Shown here: piece by piece, positions 1-33,169 of the stretch | Position numbering within the stretch: the stretch's first letter is position 1 | How the letters are laid out: each line of letters starts with the position of its first letter | Source: Stylophora pistillata | Lineage: Eukaryota | Reading direction: 5' to 3' | Assembly (NCBI RefSeq): GCF_002571385.2 | Contig: NW_019217808.1 | Location: forward strand, 320,035 to 384,034 | DNA: 64,000 nt | Notes under the pieces: generated by a model | Database searches by the model: none | What the model was told of the DNA's origin: nothing | What the model saw: the letters and a program-made list of their open reading frames with translations, nothing else | Program-made: the position numbers and the translations under genes

Positions 1-180
1 CTTCCAAGTATAGAGTAATAGAGATGAAAAAGTGAAACTCTTACACTGACTTTTTTTCCGCTGGCTTTGTTTCAAATAATGCGTGGGTTATAGTTTTGTT
101 CATAATGAAACAACTATTCACCTCAGTGCCGGTGGCTAGCGGTGGATATTTACCTCTCCGCTTCGCGGCTCGGTAAATAT

Positions 181-793
181 TAGCCTGCAGAACCGGCGTA
201 ATTTTTTGCGTCTTACTGGCGAACTGAGACAAGCGTCAGGCGAGCGTATAGCGCGAGTCGCGCGAGGGAAGGAGGGCGTGATCATGATTAGGTTACGACT
301 TACTGGTTACAAATTTTTGCAATTTCGAAAAATAATGTATATCGGATGCGCTGGGAATAGGCTTACCCACACTGTACAGCAATAACGTGTCCATATCTTC
401 GAATAAGGGAAGAAAAGCCATGAAACTGCTACATTAATAGCCAGTAGAACAGTAGGCTACGAGCCATCCCTCCTTTTCGGCGGAGTCCGTCGCGCGAGTC
501 TTAAAAAGTTAGCAAGAAAAGAAACAAATGGTGGCTGACACGCTAGCTACTTTATCGTGACCCTTTCTCCCAGGGTTACGCGCGGTGCGCTATAACATTT
601 CTTTTTCCACTGAGTCTTTTTTTACCCTCGCGACGGACTTTGCCGAAAAGGTGGCACTGCTCGCAGTGTAGTAGAATGGGTGTATTTTTTTTGCTATTGA
701 AGCGTTTGTGAAGGCGAGCGCGAGGTGTGTTCTTGTGTCCGCGGGTGAAAAAACGTAAAAAAAAAAAAACAAACATGTTTGTTCTGCAGGCTG
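181..793. mobile_element. Nested MITE-like elements: outer element with TAGCCTGCAGAAC / GTTCTGCAGGCT termini, containing an inner element at about 452-670
   Basis: Terminal inverted repeats at 181-193 and 781-792. The inner element has imperfect inverted ends (TAGGCTACGAGC...TTTTCGGCGGAGTCCGTCGCG vs CGCGACGGACTTTGCCGAAAAG...GCTCGCAGTGTA). No coding capacity. Confidence 0.55.
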
Positions 794-911
794 TCATTTT
801 CTTTACCTACGAGCGCGTGAAATTTAGCGCATTAGCGGTGCGTTCTGCTGTAGAGCAGAGTTACTCCCGCACAAGGGGTGGTAGCTAAGCCCAAAACAAC
901 ACCTGGCAAAA

Positions 912-919
912 TGACGTCA
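912..919 (+). promoter_or_regulatory. CRE-type palindrome TGACGTCA next to a candidate first exon of the epimerase gene
   Basis: Perfect TGACGTCA in a CpG-richer patch, followed by clustered splice-donor-like sites (GTAAGG at 986, GTAAGT near 1006). Confidence 0.3.
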
Positions 920-2932
920 CCAGTCGGCTGTCAGTCATTTGGCAGAGGACATTCGCCGCATTTGCCGAATTCGCACTCAGAGAAAGTAAGGTAACGGTAT
1001 TCGGGGTAAGTGGTTGTTTATCGCAATGCTAGATCTTCGCTTTGAAATACCATCCCTTTTCGAAGTTGAGTATTAGATGCTAGAAATCTGCAGCGTTTTC
1101 AAGGCAAGAATGAAAGGAAACTTACGTTATCAGTGAATACAGAAAGCGAGTTATAAAGATGAAAGCAATGAATTTTTTAATAGTTAAAGAGCGACAGCTC
1201 TTATTGACAATTAAGTTCAAAGGCCTTTGAAAACGCTAAGACGAGCCTTTTTGCAGGGAGGATGTCTCTAGATACATTTTGATTTTTGAATTTTTCTGTT
1301 CGCCTTGACAATAGCCATCGATAAAGAAGCGAAGTATTCAGGGTGAATAAAGCTTTCTTGTTTCTTTTGAGAAAGAGTTGTGTAGGAGGAAGGCATTAAC
1401 TGACTTTTTTAAATAATTATTCCCCACGACTTTTGGTCGGCGTAGCTTACGGTAAATTCAGGTGTACGACACTTCAGTTTGATGCCTATTTTCACTTTAT
1501 TTATACGATAAAATCTGCTCTGAAAGAAATAATTTCCTAAGAACATCGGACTTCGAAAGTATGATCATGTTCCAAAATTCTTATTTTACAAAGCAAGCCA
1601 GAGACAAAAGGTTATGTAACTTATGCTCATGTCTAGCTTAATTTACTCTTAAACGTTTTCGAAAACTCCAATGGTTGGCGATTTTTGTTTTCATTCATGT
1701 GAACGAGCGTCTCGTAAACAAATACGGCATAGTGGTTAAGGTAGCCTTGGAAGTTTCCAGACGGAATGATCATAGTAACGCGAAGAGTGTAGGAGGAGTT
1801 GTTGATAGGAGGTTAAGTCCTCGGTTTGCCTATTCCGATAGACAGTCGCAGACAGCTGCAAATATCTGTCCTGGACGAGGTCGTGGATGTTGCGCGCCGT
1901 GACTAGATGGACCTGGAACACGAGTCTGATATAAAAAATGGCTATAAAGCTTGTCCCTTGTCAAGGGCTATATTTTAATTTAATGCTTAGATATTATGCC
2001 GGCAAATTTATCTTAGTATGGCTCTCGGTATGCCTGCAATCATAGACAGTCGCAGACAGATGTAAAGACCTGTCTTCAGGGTGAAGATATTGTCCACTGT
2101 GAGTAGTGGTTTTAAAACTTAGGATGAACCTGGTGTTGAGCACGATTGGGAGTGATGAAAAAAAATAAGTCTGCTTTGAGAGGAAATCAGCTAGATGTTC
2201 TCTCGTCCTTGTTTCAGAAGTTGTTTTTTGTTTTTGTTTTTTTTTTCCCTTTCAAAACAGGAAGTTTTCGAGATTTTTAAGCTGCACACTCAAGGGATGA
2301 CTACATAGAAATCTGTGTTAGTTTAGCTTTTTTCTTCTTCCATTCCAAACACTTAAGACTCAGTGGAGTGACTCTTACTTCAGTAACACGTATTTGAACA
2401 CTTTGAATCAACAAAACATTCGCGTGTAATTAAATAAGCTTGAATGTTTAATGTATTTGACACATGGTTTTGACGCCGATAATCTTTCGAGACGTGTTTA
2501 CTCTTTGTGCTAATGTTACGTTTGAACAACAGAGAACTTAGGTTTCGATGACAGCTATTTGCCAAAAAACTTGTGGGAATATAGCAATGGCAGTTGTCGT
2601 GTTTTTATAATTGGCCGCTTCAAGCCGATTTTTTTTTTTATTCCCCAAGGTATCATTAAGAAAACCAAAAGATTTTTAAATAAATTACGGATGTTTGAAT
2701 GTACGTTCAAAAGAAACTTCGCGCCATACCCAGCACGAACTGTATTTTTCACAAGTATTTGACACTGTCAGATAGGTGAGATAAATTATACTCGAAAATC
2801 TGAGCTTAATGCTTTTGAGTGGCACCCCTTAAATATGGCATTACGCCGAGAATGTGCGCAAAATTTTTCAATCTGCTTTACTTAATAATTCAAAATAGTT
2901 TAAAATTATATTGTTGAATAAATCCCGAGACG

Positions 2933-2985
2933 CAACCTCATTTCCCACCCCCATGTAGGGGGAATAGTCCCTGAGAACGAGGTTG
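2933..2985. mobile_element. Ultra-short (53 bp) MITE
   Basis: Ends are CAACCTCATT and AACGAGGTTG. Flanks are a near-perfect 9-bp direct repeat, CCCGAGACG (2924-2932) and TCCGAGACG (2986-2994). Confidence 0.55.
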
Positions 2986-3619
2986 TCCGAGACGAAGTCT
3001 GAGCGCGATAACCAACTTAGTTCGTGCAAAATTGCGAAAAGTATCCGATGAGTCTCTAGGCTTAGTTTTAGGGCAGTTAGTTAAGTCATTGCGATTGGGT
3101 CCGAAATTCGCAAAAGTTTTACAGCTGTCATAGAATTTTTGGAAAACGTTGCAAAGGGTTTCAATTCTTCTTCTGGTGACAGTTTCGATAGCTGTCAGCT
3201 ATCATTCTCAAAATGAATGACATCGTCGTAAGTCGTTGCTTGTGCTGTCATTTTGAAAGGCACAGAGTTTGGCGTGCTTGAAAGTTACCACTGCACGCTT
3301 GAATCGAAAATAGAAACTGCAAACTGTTAAAAAAATTTTGGGCTATTTTTGAAGAAGCTGTAGTTCAGTGAGGAACTGTTTCTAGCAGTCACAAAGGGAC
3401 TGTTTCTTGTCGCAGATTTCTTTTAAAACCAAAGTCCAGTTTGCGAGCGCCAGTGCGTAATTTCTGCTTTCAATATTTTATTACCTGAGTTCAAACATAC
3501 ACGATTCGTGTTTTAATAATATGCATAACGAATTTCTCGATTCTGACTAGCCAAGAATAAAGCAGTTTCAGGAAATACGATGCAGAAATACGGAAATTTA
3601 GTGCAGAGAAATTATAATT

Positions 3620-4185
3620 CAGTGTAATTTGCGATACACAGAGATAAACTACATAGTTTGTGTTTTTGTATATTACCAAGGTACACGACCCTTTAGGCAC
3701 AAGAATTATTTTTAGTTTTTCTTCATTGTCACAACCTGGTAACAGTGAAATAAGGCTCTTCTGAAAAATCATCTGTGGCGTTTGAAGTAGTGCATTTCTT
3801 ATTTCGTCGGGCATTAAAAACGTTCATTTTCTTACTCATTGCACTGAATTGATGTTTGATGAATGGAAGGGGCGTGGTCATACTAACGGCTGGCTTGCTT
3901 GACACTAAGCAAGAAAAAGGGGTATTACAGTGTAATTTACGATACAGACATACTGTCAGCTACATAGTTTGTGTTTTTGTATGTTGCCAAGGTACACGAC
4001 CCTTTTGGCACAAGAATAATTTTTCATTTTTTCTTATATCGTTGCAATCTGGTAACAGTGAAGGCTCTTTCAGAATAGTAACTGTGGCGTTTGAAGTAGT
4101 GCATTTCTTGTCTCGTCGGGCATTAAAAACTCGTTCGTTTTTATACTTGGTGCTTGGCCGTACAAACGGCTGGCTTGCTTGACAC
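3620..4185. repeat. Diverged tandem duplication, two units of about 260-290 bp
   Basis: Units at about 3620-3905 and 3929-4185 share CAGTGTAATTT...CTACATAGTTTGTGTTTTTGTAT...CCAAGGTACACGACCCTTT...CTGTGGCGTTTGAAGTAGTGCATTTCTT...AACGGCTGGCTTGCTTGACAC. Confidence 0.85.
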
Positions 4186-4711
4186 CCGGCCGTGTTAATT
4201 GTAACACGACATTAGCATTTAATATGAATTTCGCACAAAATTTGTCCAGTCTGTAGAGTTAAAATATCAACGCGCAACAAGATTTTCATTGGTCAGCTCT
4301 GAGCAACTTGTTACTGACGCAGATGACGATCTAAACGAGGAAGCGTGTTCGAATACGGAATCAACCAACCAACCAATAAGTAAACTTCAGAAGCTCTCAG
4401 ACTTTCTCACATCAGTGACGTTGTGGTTGGATGTGTAACTAAGCTAATCCTGAGAATTTGCCGTTATTTCAAAACAGTATCCCCAAGCTGATAATTAAAA
4501 AAAATTCTCACTTCCTGTTTGTCTCGCATAGTGTCACAGTTTTAGAGGAAAATATGTGTGTTGATCCTTTAGAGTACTGTCAATTGCCTCTTTTTTTTTT
4601 TGCCTGAAAAATGAATGTCAGTACCTTCAAATACGCTAAAATGTTGTTGGACTTACGCTTGGATGATTTTCCCCTTGTTTTTAGATTTCGTTGCCAGTAT
4701 ACGGTAAGAAT

Positions 4712-6072
4712 ATGGAAACTAATGGATGCTACAATTTGCGAAAGCGGCGAGTGTTGGTAACGGGTGGCGCAGGCTACCTTGGATCAACAATGGTACCCAT
4801 CCTGCTCCAACGTGGTCATCACGTGGTTGTCTATGATAAGTTCATGTGGGGAGCTTTTCCCCTTTTGCCTCATGCAGCGAACCCAAATTTGGAGATTGTC
4901 AGAGGGGACATTCTGGACAGGAACCTCTTGGCGAGACACATGGAAGACTGTGACGTTATAATCCATCTCGCCGCCATTGTTGGATACCCTGCTTGTGAAA
5001 AATTTCACGATGAGGCCATCCAGGTAGGAGGACTGGAACGAGAAATTTTCCACCTGATTCAAATGTAATCTAGAGTTCCGTTGGCTTCTCTCATTTCGTT
5101 CAAAGATTGATTCAAAAATAAGAAAACTCGCGCTATTTCACCACTAATCAGATGCAAAACTAAAGGAAGACAAGATCAGACAAGGCTGAACAAGTCTAGG
5201 CTAGGGTAACTAGACTAGATTAGTTTTTCAATGGGACTGGATTGGACTAGGCTAGACTGGGCCAGGCCAGACTAGACGGGATTAGATTGGAGAAGTCTGA
5301 ACGAGGTTAGGCTAGGTTAAATTAAACTGCTTAGACGACCAGATTAAACTTGACTTTTTGCGATAATACCCTGACAACGACTGTGGCCATGTTCTCTGTG
5401 GCCATGTTCTTGTAGGTGAACGTAGAGGGTACAAGGAACATTGTAGAAAATCTAGCAGAAGATCAGCATTTAATCTATGCCTCCACTGGGTCATGCTACG
5501 GAGCTGTCCAGAATGGCGTTTGTGACGAAGAAACACTGATTTCCCCCCTAACTCTGTACGGAAGAACAAAAGCTGAAGGAGAGAAATTGGTGTTGGACGC
5601 CGGAGGAGTTGCGCTTCGCTTGGCCACTGTGTTCGGTGTGTCCCCCCGCTTACGGCTCGACCTTCTCGTGAACGATCTTACTGACAAGGCTCTAAGGCTC
5701 CAGCACTTCGATCTGTATCAGGGGGGCTTTCGCCGCACTTTCCTTCACGTGAAAGATGCTGCCAGAGCATTTGTGTTTGCGGCGGAAAACTATAAGGAAA
5801 TGGCAGGGCAGGCTTTCAACGTTGGAGACGAGAACATGAACTTGTCAAAGTCTGACGTGGCCTGCATCATCCAAGAGTGTGTACCAGGCTGCCTCATCAC
5901 GCAATCTAACAGTGGAGAGGACAAGGATAAAAGAGATTATGAAGTGTCTTACAAGAAGGTCCGATCTCTAGGTTACCCCGCTACGATATCAGTGGAAGAA
6001 GGTGTCAAGGAACTCGTGAAATTCTTACCATGTCTTAGTGAAGAAGAAATCGAAAAAGCGAGGAATATATAA
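4712..6072 (+). CDS. NAD-dependent epimerase/dehydratase (extended SDR), similar to bacterial GDP-heptose C4-dehydrogenase (Cj1427/WcaG-like); about 322 aa
   Basis: Exons 4712-5023 and 5416-6072 are joined by a phase-0 GT-AG intron. Motifs: Rossmann [17 protein letters not shown], catalytic YGRTK (YxxxK), [38 protein letters not shown]. An acceptor AG at 4683-4684 implies a further upstream exon. Confidence 0.9.
5165..5350. repeat. Degenerate pentamer microsatellite (CTAGA/CTAGG/CTGGG-like) in the epimerase intron
   Basis: Runs such as CTAGGCTAGG, CTAGACTAGATTAG and GACTAGGCTAGACTGGGCCAGGCCAGACTAGAC. Confidence 0.6.
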
Positions 6073-6524
6073 TGATAAAATCAAATGCTGAAAATAACCC
6101 CATCAAACTCCCTAGATGTGATTTGTAACTCTCATGTCAGTAATTAGTCTATTCCTTGTAAGTTAGTCTTAGGAACTGGGTATATTATCTCTGGGTGCTT
6201 ACTGGTAGCATGTAACAAACGCGATTAGAGTTTTCTCTTAACAGGAATTAAGGATTTTTTCAAACAAGGTCTTGATTTTTTAAACGTATTTATTTCACTC
6301 TAAGAAAAAATATTTACAAAACGAGATAGGTTACTGAATTTACGGTGAGCTTTTCACGATGAGGAGGTTGCTTTGAGCAGTTTAATTGCCCTGTAACTTA
6401 ATTTGTTTATAAGCCTAGTGACTTTGTTTTAGCACTCTCTTGACTGTTGGTACTGAGTACAAGCACGCTTGCATGATATTCTACAGGAGAACAGTCTGCG
6501 CGGGTCATTTCATAGTGAATATAT

Positions 6525-6840
6525 ATATATCTTATTAACCAAGCGCGAGGGCCGTACTGGGAGAATATCGGCCCGAGGTCTTGACAGTACGGACCGAGCG
6601 CAGCGAGGTCCGTACAAAAAAGACCGAGGGCCGATATTCTTCCAGTACGGTCCCGAGCAAGCTTGGTTAATAAGAGATTTATTATACGACTGAAGTTCAA
6701 AGGGACACAAGTGCGGTATCATTCGGGACCATTCGGGACAGTGCCCGGTCCAATACTTAGAGAATATTGGACCGGCAATAGAGCATTTTGATTGGTTGAT
6801 TTTAGTTATTGGCCCTCTGACTGCCCGAGTCGTGTAATAA
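6525..6840. mobile_element. Non-autonomous hairpin-type DNA element (family also at about 19552-20005 and 39818-39930)
   Basis: Imperfect palindrome of about 145 bp, CTTATTAACCAAGC...GTACGGACC-GAGCGCAGCGA-GGTCCGTAC...GCTTGGTTAATAAG, then a tail ending TGTAATAA. Near-identical copy at 39818-39930 and a diverged copy at 19552-20005. Confidence 0.75.
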
Positions 6841-8232
6841 AGCCTATTAGCGAAAATAAGTATGCGGTACATGTATCAAGCAGTATTCGGCTTAGTAGTG
6901 TCGAATCAAAATCTTGCTTCAACCCAATCAGTGACGGCCAACTGACCATCACTCGTACTCCAAGGAGTCTTGGGTCTCAGAAAGACTTGTGTTCTGTTCT
7001 ACAATGATGTTAGATGTTAGATAATTTTGTAATTTAGTTACTTAGACTTCAATTTGCTCTATGGGTAAAAGAAAAAAGCGCGGTTTGAAAACGCTAATTA
7101 ATCACGAACTCGATAATTCAACGCGGATCGCGCCTTAACGGCCTTTGGCTCTGTTTTTGTTGTCAACTGTTGGTCTACCTCTTATCTAGACGAAACCGTT
7201 AGATTTCAATTTAAGATTTTCGTTTTTAATTTCGCGCTCTCTCTCTTTTCTCTAACATTAAAATTTTCATAGGCTCAGGAAAAAGGAACCACTGACAATG
7301 CGTGGGAAAGCGAAACAGCTAGACAAGTAATGTTTCCCAGTGTTTTCCATGTTCTCCAATATTTAATTTGCAAATAATATCATAGTGATTTCTTTTCAGT
7401 TAAGACGCCTAGGTTACATAGTTGGTATTCTCACTGAGCAATTGAAAATAAACATAACTTGATGCATCGCAGAACAAGATGGTGATGGTGGTTCAGCGCG
7501 GTGAATTTTTTTTTTTTTCAATATTTGAGTTCCTTTTTGGTCGAGACCAACAACAGCTTTTGAAGTAAACTATGAATGAAGTTGACATTTACAAATTAAA
7601 CCAGTCATACCAGTCAGTCTAGTAGTCCATTCAACGCGTCTCCAGCAAACTTTTAAATATTTTACTTTGTGTTGGTTGACTTAACGTTGGTTTGTTATGA
7701 AAGCAATTTGATAGATATGTTCAGAGTATCTTTCATCTTGGCTAGTAGCGGCACAGTTTATTAAAAACTACCAAGTTATCTTTAACTCAAAGTCGAAAGC
7801 AATTAAAAGATGAAATAATAACTTGAAATGTGTATCTCGGTTGTAACACGGATTTTCTCAAACGTCGTTTACTTGTTTATGAGGATCGCACGCTTGTCCA
7901 TAATCCCAGTGGAAATGGACAAACTTTATTCAGTCTCCATATTTTCCCGAGCTTTTTTTAGGATTCACCATTAATATTCAAACTTCAGCTATCATTAATA
8001 CAAAGTTATTTTTCCCTAGTTACAGTTTCAAGTGCTATTTCAGTTGTCTGCTCGCGATCATATCATTTCTTGCTAAAAAAAATACCAAATAAACCCCTGA
8101 TCGTCTGGCGATGTACATATTCCTGGTTGTTGAGCTGACATCACGGGCAATGGAGTATATTTTCTGAATTTAGTACCGGAAAAACAAGAACTGGAAAGCC
8201 TCGTGGTTTGAAGAAGCATGGCCGGAAACTTA

Positions 8233-9639: not shown

Positions 9640-12600
9640 ATGCGTGGAGGCGAGAATTGTGTTTCGTACGTCATAGTTTATGGAAATAAGTTTATTATTA
9701 AGATTATTTTGAACCATTGTGGAACTTTCAAAGTTATTAACCATATTTCAGCTTATAGCAACCTCTGTCTACTTGTTGAATAATGAAAAATATTCTCAAA
9801 ATCGATGTCTGTTTTATAATCCTTGAGAGAAAGAAAAATACAAAGAGTTGAAATCGTTGTTATTTCGTTTTGTTTATAGATTGAATAGCAAAGGTGAAGT
9901 TTGAAATTTTCTAGAAAACAATTGTGGTATAACATATTGCAATTACCTGTGGATTTCTACCAACACCTTCTTTGGTGTCTGCAATAAACAGTCCTTCATT
10001 AAACTCTGAAGAATCAAACTGTTTTGGTTTGTAATTTTAAAAGTTGAGTAAATTTTGTTAGACCAGATGTTCACACTATTGTGAAATCTGCCCTTTGCCC
10101 ACGCAGCCTGGTGAGAGGAATTCTGGCTTTGGTACCTGTTAGTAGAAAATGAATTAAACGAGCACCGGGACTCTATTGCTTTGAATCATTGTGAATATGT
10201 TATTTCCCAGTGAATATGAGATTTCCCAGTGAGTAGTTTGATTTACTGCTAGTCATAACTTTATTCAAAGGATGGACAATTTTTAATCTCAGTAGTGAAT
10301 ACAGCCAGTGAACAGCATTACTTTTTTTTATTTGCTTACAAACAGATTGGATTTACTTCATAGTGATGTGTGCAGCAAACCTGATTATGTAACAACTGAA
10401 AAATATTAGGCTTCAGCGACAGACTAAGGAATTGTAAGGGCAAAGGATAATATTTTTTTAACTGTGGATCAATTTACATGTAAAGCACTTGATCTGAAGT
10501 CCATATTTTTTATCTGAAATTCAAGGCAGGGTGCTATCATTGGCTACCAAGGATTGTGGGAAATTCTCTGGCCTATTTTTTGGCCTGTATGTGCGCTTTT
10601 TATTATCAAAATTCTCTCACAACCCACTTCCCATGGGAATGAACCCTATCAAAATCTTCAAACAACAGAGATTTATAACCTCTTAGGTAGAAGAGGACCA
10701 TGCTTCTGAAATTAGCTCATTTTGTTTCTTCATCCAGACAAAAATAAAAAAAATGTGAGTAAGTATACAGTTCCATGAACATTAAAACAGGCTTAAAATG
10801 AACTTGTCAACTTGTTGCAAAAACTGAACTTTGAAACAGTTTATTATCTCATTTCAGCTTGAAGAGATGTGCCCGGTACATTTTTATCAGGCATCTGTCA
10901 AGTGCTCAGACCAAGGCTGCCCTGAAACCATTTTACTTTGCAGTTCATCCTGATCTTTTTGGCCAGTATCCAATGCAGAGGGTAAGCAAAATTATTCAGT
11001 GACACTTAAGTCTTGAAGAACCTGTAATAAAACATCTCAAAATATTTGAAATGGTTGATGACCAAAGATTTCACTCAAAGGGGTCTCATATTAAGTACGT
11101 ATAAATGTTGTCATGGCAAGGATCACAGTGTGTGATTATTTTGTCTCATAATGACGCCCTTGGAGACCTGTGATTTCATGTGATGGCATAGTGATCTGTG
11201 GACTCAAGTTTAAGATCACAGCCTGACAATATTATAAATGCATGGACGAAAAGCTGTGATCTTATGCATCTGTGGCTTAATTCTAAGATTGTCAAATTTA
11301 AGGCTTTAACCCTTTTTCTACCAAGATCTGATTGTTACTTCTCCCCTCAAGCTATTTGACATATCTTTATAAATTAGTTGCAAGAATTTGGTGTAAGATT
11401 AAGGCAACAACTTCTACCTGAGTATTAAGTATTCTCATGTTTGCTGGAATATGTTTGTATATTATTGTTGTAAGGTTGTTGTGTAGGAAAGGCTGGGATT
11501 GTACACATCTGTGACTATTATAAGAACTTCAAATTAAGCTTAAACCTTTTTCTACCAAGATCTGATTGTAACATCTCTCCCCCCCACATCAAGTTTCTAG
11601 ACATTTCCTTGTAAGTTAGTAGGGAGAATTAGGAGTTAGATCAAGATAACTTGATTAAAGTACCATTTAGTTGTTGTCAAGAGAGATTTTCATACAAATT
11701 TTACTTTTTTGGTTTATTTGCAGTCAATAAATGAAGATTCATTGAAGAGGTTGAACTCATACTTGGAAGATCTGCAGAAGAAAAATCCTGTTAATCCTAC
11801 ACACTTGTTGTTTTATCTGAAAAATGATACAGCAACACCACCACTTGAAGAGGGTAAGGCATACTAAAACTTAAGGGGTTGTGATGATAATATAAAACAG
11901 CCTTATGTGTTACCGTATTAAAGTGTTTTTTCTATGATGAAATGTTATAATTTTTTATTTAAATTTTAGTCATAGGGCAGCTTATTTATAATAAGTAGGT
12001 CATCTATTGTTATATTTTGTGTTCTTTCTTTATATGCATATTACCTTTTAAATCGGGAAAGTGTTGAGAATTTGCCATTTTACTCAATGTACTTTCTTAT
12101 TCCATGTAAGGGCAGTTAAGAGTCCTTGTAGCTCAAGGGTATCCCAGAGTCAACTGGTGTTAAGATTGCCTATGAGAGGGTGTCATCCAAGTTGTGGTAC
12201 AAGTATCATCATAATTATACTAGCATGTTGGAATTGATAATTAACAATAAATTAATAATTGTTGAACATGCGGTTGTTAGGGCTGGATCTCTTCAAGACA
12301 GTAAGAGTTTCGCTTTTCTCACGTGATGTCCAGTTCACCATCAGCCATATTTTGAAGACCTGTGGTATGTTGGAGGATTTGGTCACCCTTCATCAAAACA
12401 GTGAAAAACCCAAGGTGTCAGTAGCACTGCCTTATGATGCACCACTTCACTGGCTTAATGTTTATAAACAGTTTAGTGACAGACAGAGCCCTGTGGACCT
12501 TGCTCAATTACAGCGAAACTCACGACTCTCTCTAAGGGACTTCCTGGACAAGAACATCAAAAATGCCAAGGGAAAACAAGAAAGTAGCCAATCTGTCTTA

Positions 12601-14501
12601 GAGGAAAGTAAACTATTGTCTGATAAGATTTGTGAAGAACTCAGATTAAACAAGCTGCAGTCAATCAGTGGCTGGAGTTATGCATCTTATCATGGCTCCC
12701 TTAAAAACTTCTGGAACCTTTGCTTATCCAAGCAGTCTGACCTTCAGAATCTCAAGGGACGTACAATAATTTTTACAGACTGGACAGGGGTTGATCCTCT
12801 CGGTCGTGTCATGTTGAATGCTCAAGATGTCCCAGAATTTTGGCTTTCAGTAAGTAAGACAACCTTTACGGCCTTGTGGCACACAACCACCTGAGCTTAT
12901 TCTACTCTTTTGGCCTGAAGACATGTTAGGAGAATTTGAAATCTTGCTAGATTGCATGCTTGTCTAAAAGATTGATGAAACCCTTGGTGGTTATGTATAA
13001 ACTATATTCTGCTCATCTAAAGAGGTGTTGTATCTGGACCCTGCGGTTGCAGGTGCAAAACTATTGAAAAAAATTGAGTGAAAGTGAGTAGAAGTTACAA
13101 AGTTTGCAACCTAACCACAGATATTTCGTTGTTTTGGAGGGATCAAAGTAGGTAATCCTGCTAGCTGATAAGAAAATCAGAACACAGAATTCACTTCACT
13201 TTGGCTGCTTACAGAAACTAGAGCTCTCAATTAAGTCTTGTTGATTGAATGTGAGACTTGGGAAAACAAGTTCAATCTTTTGCTCTCATGCTGAGAAAAT
13301 ATTATTTCTTTTTCTGTCAGAACTTAACATCCTTGGAAGACTCTGATGTTCTTGTCGATCAGGTTCCTATGTGGGAGAGAAAACTCTCTTCATTACTTGG
13401 TGACATGAAGATCAAATATGATGAAGATTCACCCTCAGTCTCAGTTGTGGAATATTTAAACTACTTGTACAGAGTAGTTTCTTCACTGAAAAGAGGATTA
13501 CTTGGACCTGATGCTTCAACAACCATTCAGCCGGGAGAATTCAAAGAGTGTACTGCAAGAATTCTAAGGTTTGTTAGTTTTTATGTTACCAAGTCAAAAT
13601 AGAAAAATTGAAACTTTTTCACTCACAAATTGTCAGTGTCGAAAAAGATTAAAAGATTATAAATTTATTCTCTTATCTTGAGCCTGACAAAAGTACAGCA
13701 TTGCTCAAAAGCATATTGACAGTCCTTCAAAACTTGATCCTCCAAGTTGAGAATTGAGACATTTGAGTTGAGTTTCAAGACACTCAAAACTTGTTTTGAA
13801 TGTCACAAAATGAAGAAACAAACAAATATTAGTTGGATAAGACTGAAGCAATGATAGAAAAGGCTGCAATGATTTTAAGTCTTCAGAAGGAAAAATGATG
13901 TGTATTTACCTGGAAAAATAATTAATAAAAGGACAATTATAGGGAAATGATTAAAAATTATTATTTCAGTCCAGCAGATGCACTCAGCCTGTCACTTAGT
14001 GGTGAGTTTAGAATACCACCTTCAATTCCAACAGAGTTGATAGTGGATTTTCTGGGAAAGCACAAACAGAAGGCTATGGACCTACATGACGAGAACAAAA
14101 GGTGTGGAGACTTATTCTGATACTATCAAACATTTGTTTTATACTGCAAAGAACAGGATAAAGTCCTGCAAGGTGTGCTAGCTACTATGCCGGGCTCGAA
14201 ACCTGGTTATGAATTTTTATTTTAAAATACAAGGAAATAAATTTGCTGATGGTTATCATATTTTCATTTTGTTTCCAGGAACATATTAACAGAAGAGCAG
14301 GCAGTTCAGTCATGTAGAGAGAAATTTCAGTTCTCCTCTCTTTCTAAAGACAGCTCCGTTTCACCATTGCAGATGAGTGACTGCTGTGAGAGACTTCTTG
14401 GGGAAGACTACCCTGATATTAAAAATACAAACCTCATTGTTTCCAAATATTACCATGTCAATGAAGATGGTCAAATCAGTATTCCATGGAACTGGAAGTG
14501 A
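9640..14501 (+). CDS. TCAIM: T-cell activation inhibitor, mitochondrial homolog (DUF4460/DUF4461); about 483 aa, 7 coding exons
   Basis: Exons 9640-9665, 10858-10981, 11724-11853, 12281-12849, 13321-13568, 13970-14101 and 14279-14501 splice in frame with GT-AG ends. Diagnostic ALKPFYFAVHPDLFGQYP...INEDSLKRLNSYL at the N-terminus and C-terminal IPWNWK*. The first 26-nt exon is inferred from phase compatibility. Confidence 0.9.
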
Positions 14502-30739: not shown

Positions 30740-33169
30740 TCACTTTCTAGACAAAGCTGAGAGGTGTGGACTAGAAGAATAAGGAGAATTGCTTCCATCA
30801 CTGCTCTCCGAATCGCTCTGATCAATATGTCTGGATCCAACATGCTGTGAAGAATTTCTTCCTTCCAGCCCTAACATTTGGCGGCTCACAAGCTTTGCAT
30901 AGAGTCCATTTTGTTCCACTAGCTCTTTATGCTTTCCTTGGGCAATAACTTGACCCTGATCAATAACAACAATTTTGTCAGCTTTCTCAATAGTGCTCAG
31001 ACGATGGGCCACTATCATTACGGTGTGGCCAGTCAAATTCTTGTAAATTGCATCCTGGACAAGATGCTCACTTTCTGCATCTAAAGCACTAGTAGCCTCA
31101 TCCAGCAGGAGGATTTGAGGATTGCGAACTAATGCTCTAGCAATAGCGACCCTTTGCTTTTGACCACCTGATAACTGCAAGCCCTTTTCACCAGTTTCTG
31201 TGTTATATCCCTGCGGCATATCACTGATAAAAGAATGTGCATTGGCAAGTTTGGACACATTTTCCACTAAACATTGATCAATCTCATCATTACCAAGACC
31301 ATATGCAATGTTTTCCTTGACTGATCTAGCAAACAGTACTGGTTCCTGACCAACCAGAGCCACTTTGTTGTGCAAATATTTGTGATCAAAATTCTTCACT
31401 GGGATTGAATCAATCAAAACTTCACCAGAAGTTGGCTCATAAAAGTGCTCTAGAAGACTTATGCAGGTGCTCTTCCCACCACCACTGGGACCCACTAGAG
31501 CAATCACTTCACCTGGTTTGATGCTAAATGACACCTTATCCAAGACTGTAATATCTGGTCTTGTGGGATATGCAAAGGAAACATTTTGAAATGTAACTTC
31601 ACCTGAAACTTCACCAGGAGTAACAACACCACTGTTCTGAATCTTGGGTTCTCGGTCAATGAGTTCAAATACTTTCTGAGAAGCACCAACAGCCTCCATA
31701 AGACCTGTATATATCTCACCTACTTCATCTATGTAAAAGCTAAGCTGAAGTAGATACAGTATGAAAGATACTAAATATCCACCGGTCAGATCTCCATTAA
31801 TTACTAAATGGCCACCATAGAGTAGAACAATGACGTCAATGGCAAGGGAAAGAATTTCAGTCCACCATCTATATCCTCCATACAGGAAGGATTCCTTGAC
31901 TTTAAGTCTATATATTCCATCTTGTTTGCTCTTGTATCGTTCATATTCACCATCTTCATTTGCAAAGCTTCGAACAGTCTTCATGGAAGATACAACTTCT
32001 GCTGCAATTTCATTTGCCTTGGCAGTTTCTTCTTGAACTTCTGTTGCCAACTTCTTATAGTAGTCTCCATAAATGTCTGAGATAAGTGCAACCAAAGGCA
32101 AGCCAACCAGGGTTACAATAGTTAACTTCCAAGAAAGTTTGAACATAAAAACACATGTACCAATGGACTGAACGCAGTTCCGCAGAAAAACGTTTATGTT
32201 TAATCCTACTTGATCTGACATCTTTGTTGTGTCTGAGCTCAAACGCGAGACAATATCTCCTGTCTTTGTACTATCAAAGAATCCAATTTCTTGTTTCACA
32301 ATAGAGCCAAATAAAAAATTACTGATCCTCTTGGTAAATCTTGCCGCAATCAAGTTGAACAGCCCACCACGCAAGCCAGCTGCGATTGCTGTACCAAGTG
32401 ATATGAGTGTCATTATGACAATGGCATTCAAAAACTTGGTCTTGTCCTTATCAATGGCAATAGCATCTATGACCTGTCCAGTGTAATAAGGAATGAATAT
32501 TTCACCAGTTGCTGCAAGTAAGAGGAAAACAGATGCCAAAGAAATGTAAGGAAGGTCTGGTTTGCAATAAGACATCAGTCTCCAAGCAGAAATATTGTTT
32601 TTCTTCCCATTAGCGCTAGTCTCTTCCGAATCTTGAAAATCGTCCACAGTGATGAGAGCCTCTCTTTCTTGTATTGTGCCAGTTTCTTGTTCTGTAGATA
32701 AGGCCGTGATTTTGATTTTAGAGAGGAAATGCCACAGACCATTAGCAATCACCGTGGCAACTACAGTCCATCCCAGGAATAACCCCAACCAAATATTTGA
32801 CGTTTTGTCCAATTCACATTCCGTGCTGACAAGGAATTTGGTTACAACGAAGACGACGACTCCAACGCTGTAATAAAGCCAAGGTTTCTTAAATGTGATA
32901 ATTCTGGAAACTGCATCCATTTTGCGTTTAGCAAACAGTATTCCCAAGACGGCACCAAATAAAGTGCAACAGCGTACCAAAGACAAAATCCACAAATCAA
33001 AAACCGAGGAACAAAATTTGAATTTTTCCACTTGTGAACGTTCATTAAAACTAGACAGGTGCTTTCCATGAATAAGCAACACAACAGAAAAGAGGGTGTC
33101 CATAACTCCTCCCAAAATACAGGAAAAGAGTGGTTTGGTTAATCCATGTCCACGCGAACAATCCACCAT
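30740..33169 (-). CDS. ABCB9: ABC transporter subfamily B half-transporter, ABCB9/TAPL-like peptide transporter; intronless, 809 aa
   Basis: One uninterrupted ORF. It has a hydrophobic TMD0-like N-terminus, a core TMD (GEIFIPYYTG, QEIGFFDSTKTGDIVSRL, SSMKTVRSFANE), Walker A GPSGGGKS, Q-loop VGQEP, signature LSGGQKQR, Walker B ILLLDEATSALD and H-loop AHRLS. Confidence 0.9.
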   Translation of the reverse strand: MVDCSRGHGLTKPLFSCILGGVMDTLFSVVLLIHGKHLSSFNERSQVEKFKFCSSVFDLWILSLVRCCTLFGAVLGILFAKRKMDAVSRIITFKKPWLYYSVGVVVFVVTKFLVSTECELDKTSNIWLGLFLGWTVVATVIANGLWHFLSKIKITALSTEQETGTIQEREALITVDDFQDSEETSANGKKNNISAWRLMSYCKPDLPYISLASVFLLLAATGEIFIPYYTGQVIDAIAIDKDKTKFLNAIVIMTLISLGTAIAAGLRGGLFNLIAARFTKRISNFLFGSIVKQEIGFFDSTKTGDIVSRLSSDTTKMSDQVGLNINVFLRNCVQSIGTCVFMFKLSWKLTIVTLVGLPLVALISDIYGDYYKKLATEVQEETAKANEIAAEVVSSMKTVRSFANEDGEYERYKSKQDGIYRLKVKESFLYGGYRWWTEILSLAIDVIVLLYGGHLVINGDLTGGYLVSFILYLLQLSFYIDEVGEIYTGLMEAVGASQKVFELIDREPKIQNSGVVTPGEVSGEVTFQNVSFAYPTRPDITVLDKVSFSIKPGEVIALVGPSGGGKSTCISLLEHFYEPTSGEVLIDSIPVKNFDHKYLHNKVALVGQEPVLFARSVKENIAYGLGNDEIDQCLVENVSKLANAHSFISDMPQGYNTETGEKGLQLSGGQKQRVAIARALVRNPQILLLDEATSALDAESEHLVQDAIYKNLTGHTVMIVAHRLSTIEKADKIVVIDQGQVIAQGKHKELVEQNGLYAKLVSRQMLGLEGRNSSQHVGSRHIDQSDSESSDGSNSPYSSSPHLSALSRK

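Follow-up and report, generated by a model that had tools for sequence, protein, structure and literature searches.

The stony coral Stylophora pistillata possesses, as an expressed gene of its own nuclear genome, an extended short-chain dehydrogenase (SDR) whose closest characterised protein, by sequence and modelled fold, is the Campylobacter capsule enzyme Cj1427. The explanation that best joins the observations, and that we consider probable, is that this is a host gene of a Cj1427-like SDR family, that the family entered animals by a single bacterial transfer before cnidarians and bilaterians diverged, and that its product would oxidise GDP-linked sugars at C4. The gene lies in a stretch of 64,000 nucleotides (contig NW_019217808.1 of assembly GCF_002571385.2, forward strand, positions 320,035 to 384,034), here called the window, and positions are those of the window unless a contig is named (the window itself being G000:C25:320035–384034). 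The features of the locus are listed below.

1–4684, + strand: 3' part of the intron of about 9.4 kb that follows the second 5' exon; acceptor AG at 4683–4684
4685–5023, + strand: third exon, the first coding exon within the window; ATG at 4712, Rossmann motif TGGAGYLGS
5024–5415, + strand: phase-0 GT-AG spliceosomal intron of 392 nt, between Gln104 and Val105; joint seen in polyA RNA
5416–6072, + strand: last coding exon, 218 codons and TAA; STGSCYG and catalytic YGRTK (YxxxK)
6073–6548, + strand: 3' UTR, up to the reach of the RNA contigs
G000:C25:310385–310483 (L007 1501–1599), outside the window: first 5' exon, with GT donor, from transcript mapping
G000:C25:315246–315320, outside the window: second 5' exon, AG before and GT after, from transcript mapping

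Read directly from the letters, the coding sequence runs from the ATG at 4712 to ...ATC CAG at 5023 and resumes after an intron with the ends gtagga...ttgtag (5024–5415), giving 104 + 218 = 322 codons. Short direct repeats occur within the intron, whose sequence is practically unique in the genome. Contigs from polyA RNA-seq runs of two studies (X1 and X4 in P1, X3 in P2) leave out exactly these 392 nt, whose ends are GT..AG, and the joint is placed at 5021/5414 (cut +2) in three polyA runs of the two studies. RNA depth is about 5 on the intron versus 86–310 on the exons, and X15, a DNA-type run, reads through the intron unspliced. The Logan transcript L006 carries the junction ATCCAG/GTGAAC, and its 322-aa product (P0001) is 99% identical to that of the window gene, the sole difference being at the polymorphic position 5978, which encodes Pro, Arg or His depending on the run. 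Three alleles occur there, namely C (Pro) in the assembly, G (Arg) in three RNA runs and A (His) in one other run, and the corresponding residue column varies between species. The first-pass annotation, made from the letters, had described an intact 322-aa extended SDR split by a phase-0 GT-AG intron; both the letters and spliced polyA RNA confirm this, with the 5023/5416 junction seen in X1, X3, X4 and L006. In the searches described below the two exons were used separately, while work on the whole protein relied on P0001, a database entry whose sequence is predicted from a transcript contig in public data.

Upstream of 4684, L006 and the RNA contigs of X3 and X4 diverge from the window letters, and their 5' letters map to C25:310385–310483 and 315246–315320. 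These are two additional 5' exons, 4.7 and 9.6 kb upstream of the window, that splice to the acceptor at 4683–4684. The two window exons of the earlier gene model are therefore retained, but the model was not complete: the whole gene spans about 16 kb, three GT-AG introns separate its four exons, and the coding sequence lies in the last two of these. The second 5' exon ends in ...CAAAATG/gtaagt, with its ATG in frame and downstream of an in-frame stop, and positions 4685–4711 are in frame with that ATG. Translation may thus start ten residues earlier, which would add MISLPVYGKN and yield 332 aa. A 17-codon upstream ORF (MVGLLAGRNTLGTKELC) is located in the first 5' exon, in the frame of the main ORF, with a TAA before the main start. 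A search of the assembly of about 398 Mb finds the gene in single copy. At the 3' end, RNA contigs span 5414–6541/6548 and L006 extends to 6554; the 3' UTR can be followed only to about 6548 because every assembly, whether of transcripts or of DNA, breaks off at a high-copy repeat. This very high-copy repeat (about 6525–6840) starts about 450 nt past the stop codon and has a summed contig depth of 10^4–10^6 in every run, and the ORFs at 6407–6872 that lie on it, on both strands, are probably spurious.

The locus belongs to the coral's own nuclear genome and is expressed. The same assembly does include bacterial contigs (C1404 and C3145), and a bacterial contaminant or an assembly artefact might be suspected for that reason, yet the chance of this is negligible, given the three GT-AG introns over about 16 kb and the spliced polyA transcripts from two studies. 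The surroundings are equally those of a host gene: the contig is large and carries host repeats, one of them of high copy number and adjoining the 3' UTR, and a DUF4461 gene lies downstream in the window (12259–13602) just as it does downstream of the orthologue in another coral (L025). Introns, polyA RNA and this conserved synteny rule out bacterial contamination, which had already been thought unlikely from the letters. Elsewhere in the window, an uninterrupted ORF of 809 codons on the minus strand (30740–33169) encodes an ABC half-transporter (ABC_membrane and ABC_tran); so large a gene without introns is out of the ordinary in this genome, and a retrogene or a further acquired gene may be considered.

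By sequence and predicted structure, the protein belongs to the Cj1427-like family and is a soluble, NAD-dependent extended short-chain dehydrogenase. The Pfam family PF01370 (Epimerase) matches both exons above its cut-off (E 8e-14 for the exon from 4685 and 1.1e-17 for 5416–6072), and the Cj1427 structure 6vo6 matches each of them as well (E 2.8e-20 for 4685–5023 and 3.2e-46 for 5416–6072, the latter with a residue-level alignment). No NCBIfam equivalog came near its cut-off (dehydratase models, 38–44 versus 365 bits). Among solved structures, P0001 scores 251 bits against 6vo6/6vo8 (E 1.4e-73), and the next chain, MoeE5, scores 82. The titles of both entries name Cj1427, an NAD-dependent dehydrogenase of C. 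jejuni, in 6vo8 with NADH and GDP-D-glycero-D-manno-heptose. The coral gene had been set apart from the canonical animal extended SDRs in the first reading of the letters, and this separation is upheld, since human UXS1 reaches only 59–61 bits and MAT2B about 57, and the two together span about 55–61 bits. UXS1, GALE, GMDS, GFUS and TGDS belong to the same superfamily, have the same fold and likewise act on C4 of nucleotide sugars in an NAD(P)-dependent manner; in the coral genome GMDS and a GFUS-like exon are found as separate multi-exon loci on C342 and C34.

The likeness to Cj1427 extends to individual residues and to the predicted fold. The two proteins are about 41% identical and share the extended SDR fold, the Rossmann motif and YxxxK, and the blocks that had been recognised as Cj1427-like from the letters do align with it residue by residue: RLATVFG(V/I)SPR(L/M), (T/N)(F/Y)(L/I)HV(K/R)D, GQA(F/Y)N(V/M)G and GED(K/P)DKRDY(E/L)VS, the last containing the shared GEDxDKRDYxVS. 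The AlphaFold model (pLDDT 94.9) has the alternating strand-helix pattern of an N-terminal Rossmann fold. In a Foldseek search with this model, ranks 1–6 are all 6vo6/6vo8 (TM 0.87–0.97, rmsd 1.2–2.5 Å), with the best superpositions at TM 0.91–0.97, rmsd 1.2 Å and 40–41% identity, whereas other SDRs fall to TM of about 0.8 and 22–28% identity, the hits next in rank being 23% identical. A GxxGxxG cofactor motif is present in the exon 4712–5023. Within an alignment of 24 family members, the coral protein retains 25 of the 25 invariant columns, and S127/T128 and Y152-G-R-T-K156 are invariant or nearly so. Certain segments differ, with VSY in the coral and TNSGYG, RNYIHVRD, YNMGL and VSN in Cj1427, and the coral gene is, unlike that of Cj1427, an animal gene with introns and without heptose-pathway neighbours. 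At the position where RmlB and the dTDP-glucose 4,6-dehydratases have STDEVYG, with an acid/base pair beside the catalytic Thr, the coral protein has STGSCYG. The Asp-Glu pair of the 4,6-dehydratases is absent from both the coral protein and Cj1427, so the dehydratase hallmark is missing, which fits an oxidation without dehydration. Close phage relatives were also considered and rejected, as isolated phage genomes hold only SDRs of 30–32% identity; viral metagenome clusters appear as look-alikes in Atlas.

The family is widespread in animals. Word-index searches, with EukProt among their sources, returned thousands of matches, and the names given here are taken from the matches listed, among which all named eukaryotes are animals. 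Orthologues are found in cnidarians (Montipora, Nematostella and Dendronephthya), in many bivalves and gastropods among the molluscs, in arthropods (Limulus, a scorpion, spiders, a mite, a centipede, a millipede and the fly Bradysia), in Priapulus, and in echinoderms, hemichordates, amphioxus and tunicates (Styela and Ciona), that is, in at least eight animal phyla among the matches listed. Identity to the coral exon is 65–70% across Cnidaria, Mollusca, Echinodermata, Hemichordata, Cephalochordata and Tunicata, and Arthropoda and Priapulida show about 50–57%, to other queries. With 65–79% identity to the Stylophora protein and membership of one clade (100/100), the animal sequences are true orthologues of it. 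Such a distribution rules out a transfer specific to corals or cnidarians; of the outcome that the first-pass annotation had named as refuting its transfer, the part on animals, orthologues spread widely over them, is what is observed. The family is not unnoticed either, because NCBI RefSeq already labels it after Cj1427 in many animals. No vertebrate name appears among the matches listed, and we know of no vertebrate with such a gene. In the literature, none of the papers mentioning Cj1427 among the matches listed deals with an animal homologue, the name 'manno-heptose dehydrogenase' was not found in any paper, and articles on horizontal gene transfer in corals make no mention of this gene.

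Some members have a history of duplication. Montipora has two paralogues, one of them of 367 aa, while the Stylophora genome shows one match only. The same division by length is seen among coral-like database proteins (P0015–P0025, of 367–381 aa, versus P0006/P0001), and the 367-aa paralogue is a full-length product in several ENA assemblies. In Nematostella, about 150 nt past the stop codon, a degenerate copy of the last 40 codons or so (L021:2098–2212, 37–67% identity) appears to be what is left of a tandem duplication of part of the gene.

In a representative library at 50% identity the animals collapse to a few entries, below which stand hundreds of proteins of 300–315 aa with 36–47% identity, and a scan of bacterial and archaeal genomes finds relatives of up to 49% identity in Myxococcota, Planctomycetota, Ignavibacteriota, Patescibacteria, Verrucomicrobiota and others. 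Three trees were built: a FastTree of 200 rows, a quick IQ-TREE of 81 rows and a careful IQ-TREE (LG+C20) of 57 rows from which the longest branches and near-duplicates were left out. In all three, the named animals form one clade together with three further lineages (P0123/P0363/P0365, P0128/P0284). The careful tree gives this clade 100/100 and separates the family from outgroup SDRs at 100/100; within the clade it recovers the arthropods (99/95) and Nematostella with the stony corals (89/82), as vertical descent predicts. The animal clade sits inside a bacterial group comprising a Myxococcota MAG (L029), P0124/P0126 and P0129 (94/89), and a larger grouping around it (98/90) has the Cj1427-type group as its sister (99/89). 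The quick IQ-TREE also nests the animals within bacteria (SH-aLRT 96 and 99). P0148, of the Cj1427-type group, scores 394 bits against 6vo6, versus 251 for P0001, and shares TNSGYG, RNYIHVRD and VSN with Cj1427. Since the animal clade lies in a sister subfamily, the animal genes are best described as Cj1427-like and not as orthologues of Cj1427.

The nesting of the animal clade among bacterial sequences makes a bacterial origin plausible, and from these trees we infer that the animal family was probably acquired from bacteria before corals and bilaterians split. No donor is named because the bacterial sister group is poorly resolved. On this view a single transfer from a bacterium would have brought the gene into the animal lineage ahead of the cnidarian-bilaterian divergence, with vertical inheritance from then on and loss in vertebrates. 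The alternative of an ancient eukaryotic gene that descended vertically from before animals, without bacterial transfer, and was lost in most other eukaryotes and in vertebrates, is rather unlikely. The lineages P0123/P0363/P0365 and P0128/P0284, in or beside the animal clade, could be non-animal eukaryotes, and protist orthologues below the identity of about 49% to which the listed matches reach would not show. Among those matches, however, EukProt included, the named eukaryotes are all animals, and the clade is nested within bacteria at 94/89 and 98/90. In addition, no intron interrupts the coding sequence in five of the eukaryote genomes or contigs sampled, an uncommon state for a gene of long eukaryotic ancestry.

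The coding sequence is continuous in Nematostella (L021), in Lottia (L022) and in the octocoral Dendronephthya (L024), and also in Mytilus-like contigs (P0035) and in a soil eukaryote (P0289). By contrast, Stylophora has gained a phase-0 intron that it shares with two other stony corals (L025 and L026), where the intron stands at exactly the Stylophora position, with the junction ...ATT CAG/gt...ag/ATA AAC. Amphioxus has an intron 9 nt, or three codons, farther downstream (VNK/EGT). Most simply, the ancestral coding sequence had no intron, and stony corals and amphioxus each acquired one independently. An ancestral intron was rejected on account of its absence from Nematostella, the octocoral, Lottia and the Mytilus-like contigs and of the 9-nt offset in amphioxus, and an origin as a transposon-derived 'introner' is not supported, since only a 45-nt piece of the intron matches elsewhere in the genome. 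The first-pass annotation had proposed a bacteria-to-animal transfer followed by intron gain. Of this proposal the bacterial origin remains plausible and the later gain holds, the intron being absent in five other eukaryotes and common to two other stony corals; the transfer, if it took place, is old and shared across animal phyla.

The reaction can be approached through Cj1427, which has been used with 2-oxoglutarate (PMC10680097). Like Cj1427, the coral enzyme would turn a GDP-linked sugar into its 4-keto form by oxidising the hydroxyl group at C4, with no dehydration step, and the product would feed a downstream epimerase, reductase or aminotransferase. Both chemistry and substrate are inferred here from an identity of about 41% to one characterised enzyme of the sister subfamily. 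The genes beside the nearest bacterial relatives agree with such a role. One relative (P0125) begins at the stop codon of a gene for ManC, a mannose-1-phosphate guanylyltransferase (GDP-mannose pyrophosphorylase); another (P0126) follows a DegT-type aminotransferase within a polysaccharide cluster; a third (L044) comes after a cupin 3,5-epimerase, and a fourth (L031) precedes a second SDR and a glycosyltransferase. These neighbours make or consume 4-keto sugars derived from GDP-hexoses, although bacterial neighbourhoods are not transferable to the animal gene. They also bear on the idea that the protein is a plain C4-epimerase, or an SDR of some other chemistry, and not a dehydrogenase that releases its product. 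The next solved relatives after Cj1427 are indeed 4-epimerases (MoeE5, UDP-GlcA 4-epimerase and UDP-GlcNAc 4-epimerase), and release of a keto product cannot be read from a sequence. But these 4-epimerases score 72–82 bits versus 251 for Cj1427 and lack the family-specific blocks shared with it, and the bacterial relatives adjoin enzymes that consume 4-keto sugars, so that simple epimerisation appears improbable.

As to the sugar, a function identical to that of Cj1427, on GDP-heptose, is unlikely. It would be suggested by Cj1427 being by far the closest characterised protein, and by a bacterial contig in the same assembly that carries HddA-like, GmhA-like and nucleotidyltransferase genes. In the coral's own DNA, however, the pathway is not apparent. 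A GmhA model searched against the coral genome matched only the bacterial-type contigs C1404 and C3145; an HldE kinase model gave a weak match (E 5.5e-4); the match of the HldE transferase model, which is generic, was a two-domain cytidylyltransferase locus, taken for an ordinary animal gene; and an RmlC-type cupin was not found in that genome. A host ADP- or GDP-heptose pathway was rejected on these grounds, and a heptose substrate in the coral is doubtful. According to two commentaries, Tang et al. 2024 report enzymes of NDP-heptose biosynthesis in some animals, e.g., Arthropoda and Mollusca (PMC11461863, PMC11573728), and their loss in deuterostomes (PMC11461863). On that account, a heptose substrate is possible in the animal lineages reported to make NDP-heptoses, and the earlier statement that the sugar pathway would be new to animals no longer holds as worded. 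The gene is nevertheless present in deuterostomes, the nearest bacterial relatives adjoin ManC or an aminotransferase and not heptose genes, and the coral protein falls in the sister subfamily. The subfamily position and the restriction of GmhA to bacterial-type contigs make GDP-mannose more likely than GDP-heptose, and the occurrence of the gene in deuterostomes, said there to have lost NDP-heptose enzymes, points in the same direction. The sequence comparisons therefore suggest that the substrate in the coral is more likely GDP-mannose or another GDP-hexose, and the enzyme would act on GDP-mannose sooner than on GDP-heptose.

The bacterial contigs themselves are of some interest. C1404 (L010, L014 and L016) is 35.9 kb long, with 30–36% GC and back-to-back ORFs, and those scanned belong to bacterial-type families, among them an SLT lytic transglycosylase, a PD-(D/E)XK transposase and glycosyltransferases. 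A cluster on it contains an HddA-like kinase, a GmhA-like isomerase, an ABC exporter and a nucleotidyltransferase, and the contig probably derives from an AT-rich associated bacterium with a GDP-heptose-type pathway. C3145 (L009), of 1.9 kb, is of the same kind.

Taken alone, the window adds modestly to what is known: it supplies one more orthologue of an automatically annotated family, corrects the gene model and dates an intron gain. In its phylogenetic setting, the locus is a clear case, and one that can be dated, of a gene of probable bacterial origin that was fixed before the cnidarian-bilaterian split, with two later and independent intron gains that can be placed on the tree. The identity of 65–70% between corals and bilaterians indicates strong constraint on an enzyme without a described role in any animal. 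This marks a gap in animal glycobiology, namely a nucleotide-sugar step that vertebrates lack and that is labelled only by analogy with a capsule enzyme of Campylobacter. A bolder reading, which we hold to be a long shot, is that a C4-dehydrogenase for GDP-hexoses, derived from bacteria, has been retained in invertebrates as far apart as corals and sea squirts and gives access to a nucleotide-sugar route not yet described in animals. In one form of it, the enzyme would convert GDP-mannose to GDP-4-keto-mannose, from which GDP-fucose synthase (a 3,5-epimerase/4-reductase) or another reductase would produce GDP-L-galactose or GDP-talose. Sea-urchin and snail galactans contain L-galactose, and to our knowledge the animal enzyme that makes the L-galactose of these and of the ascidian polymers has not been identified. 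The sulfated galactans of ascidians contain L-galactose (PMC3366676). The gene is present in Styela, Ciona, echinoderms and gastropods, and, if this L-galactose reading were true, the enzyme family would be a source of L-galactose for the sulfated galactans of ascidians and also for the galactans of sea urchins and snails.
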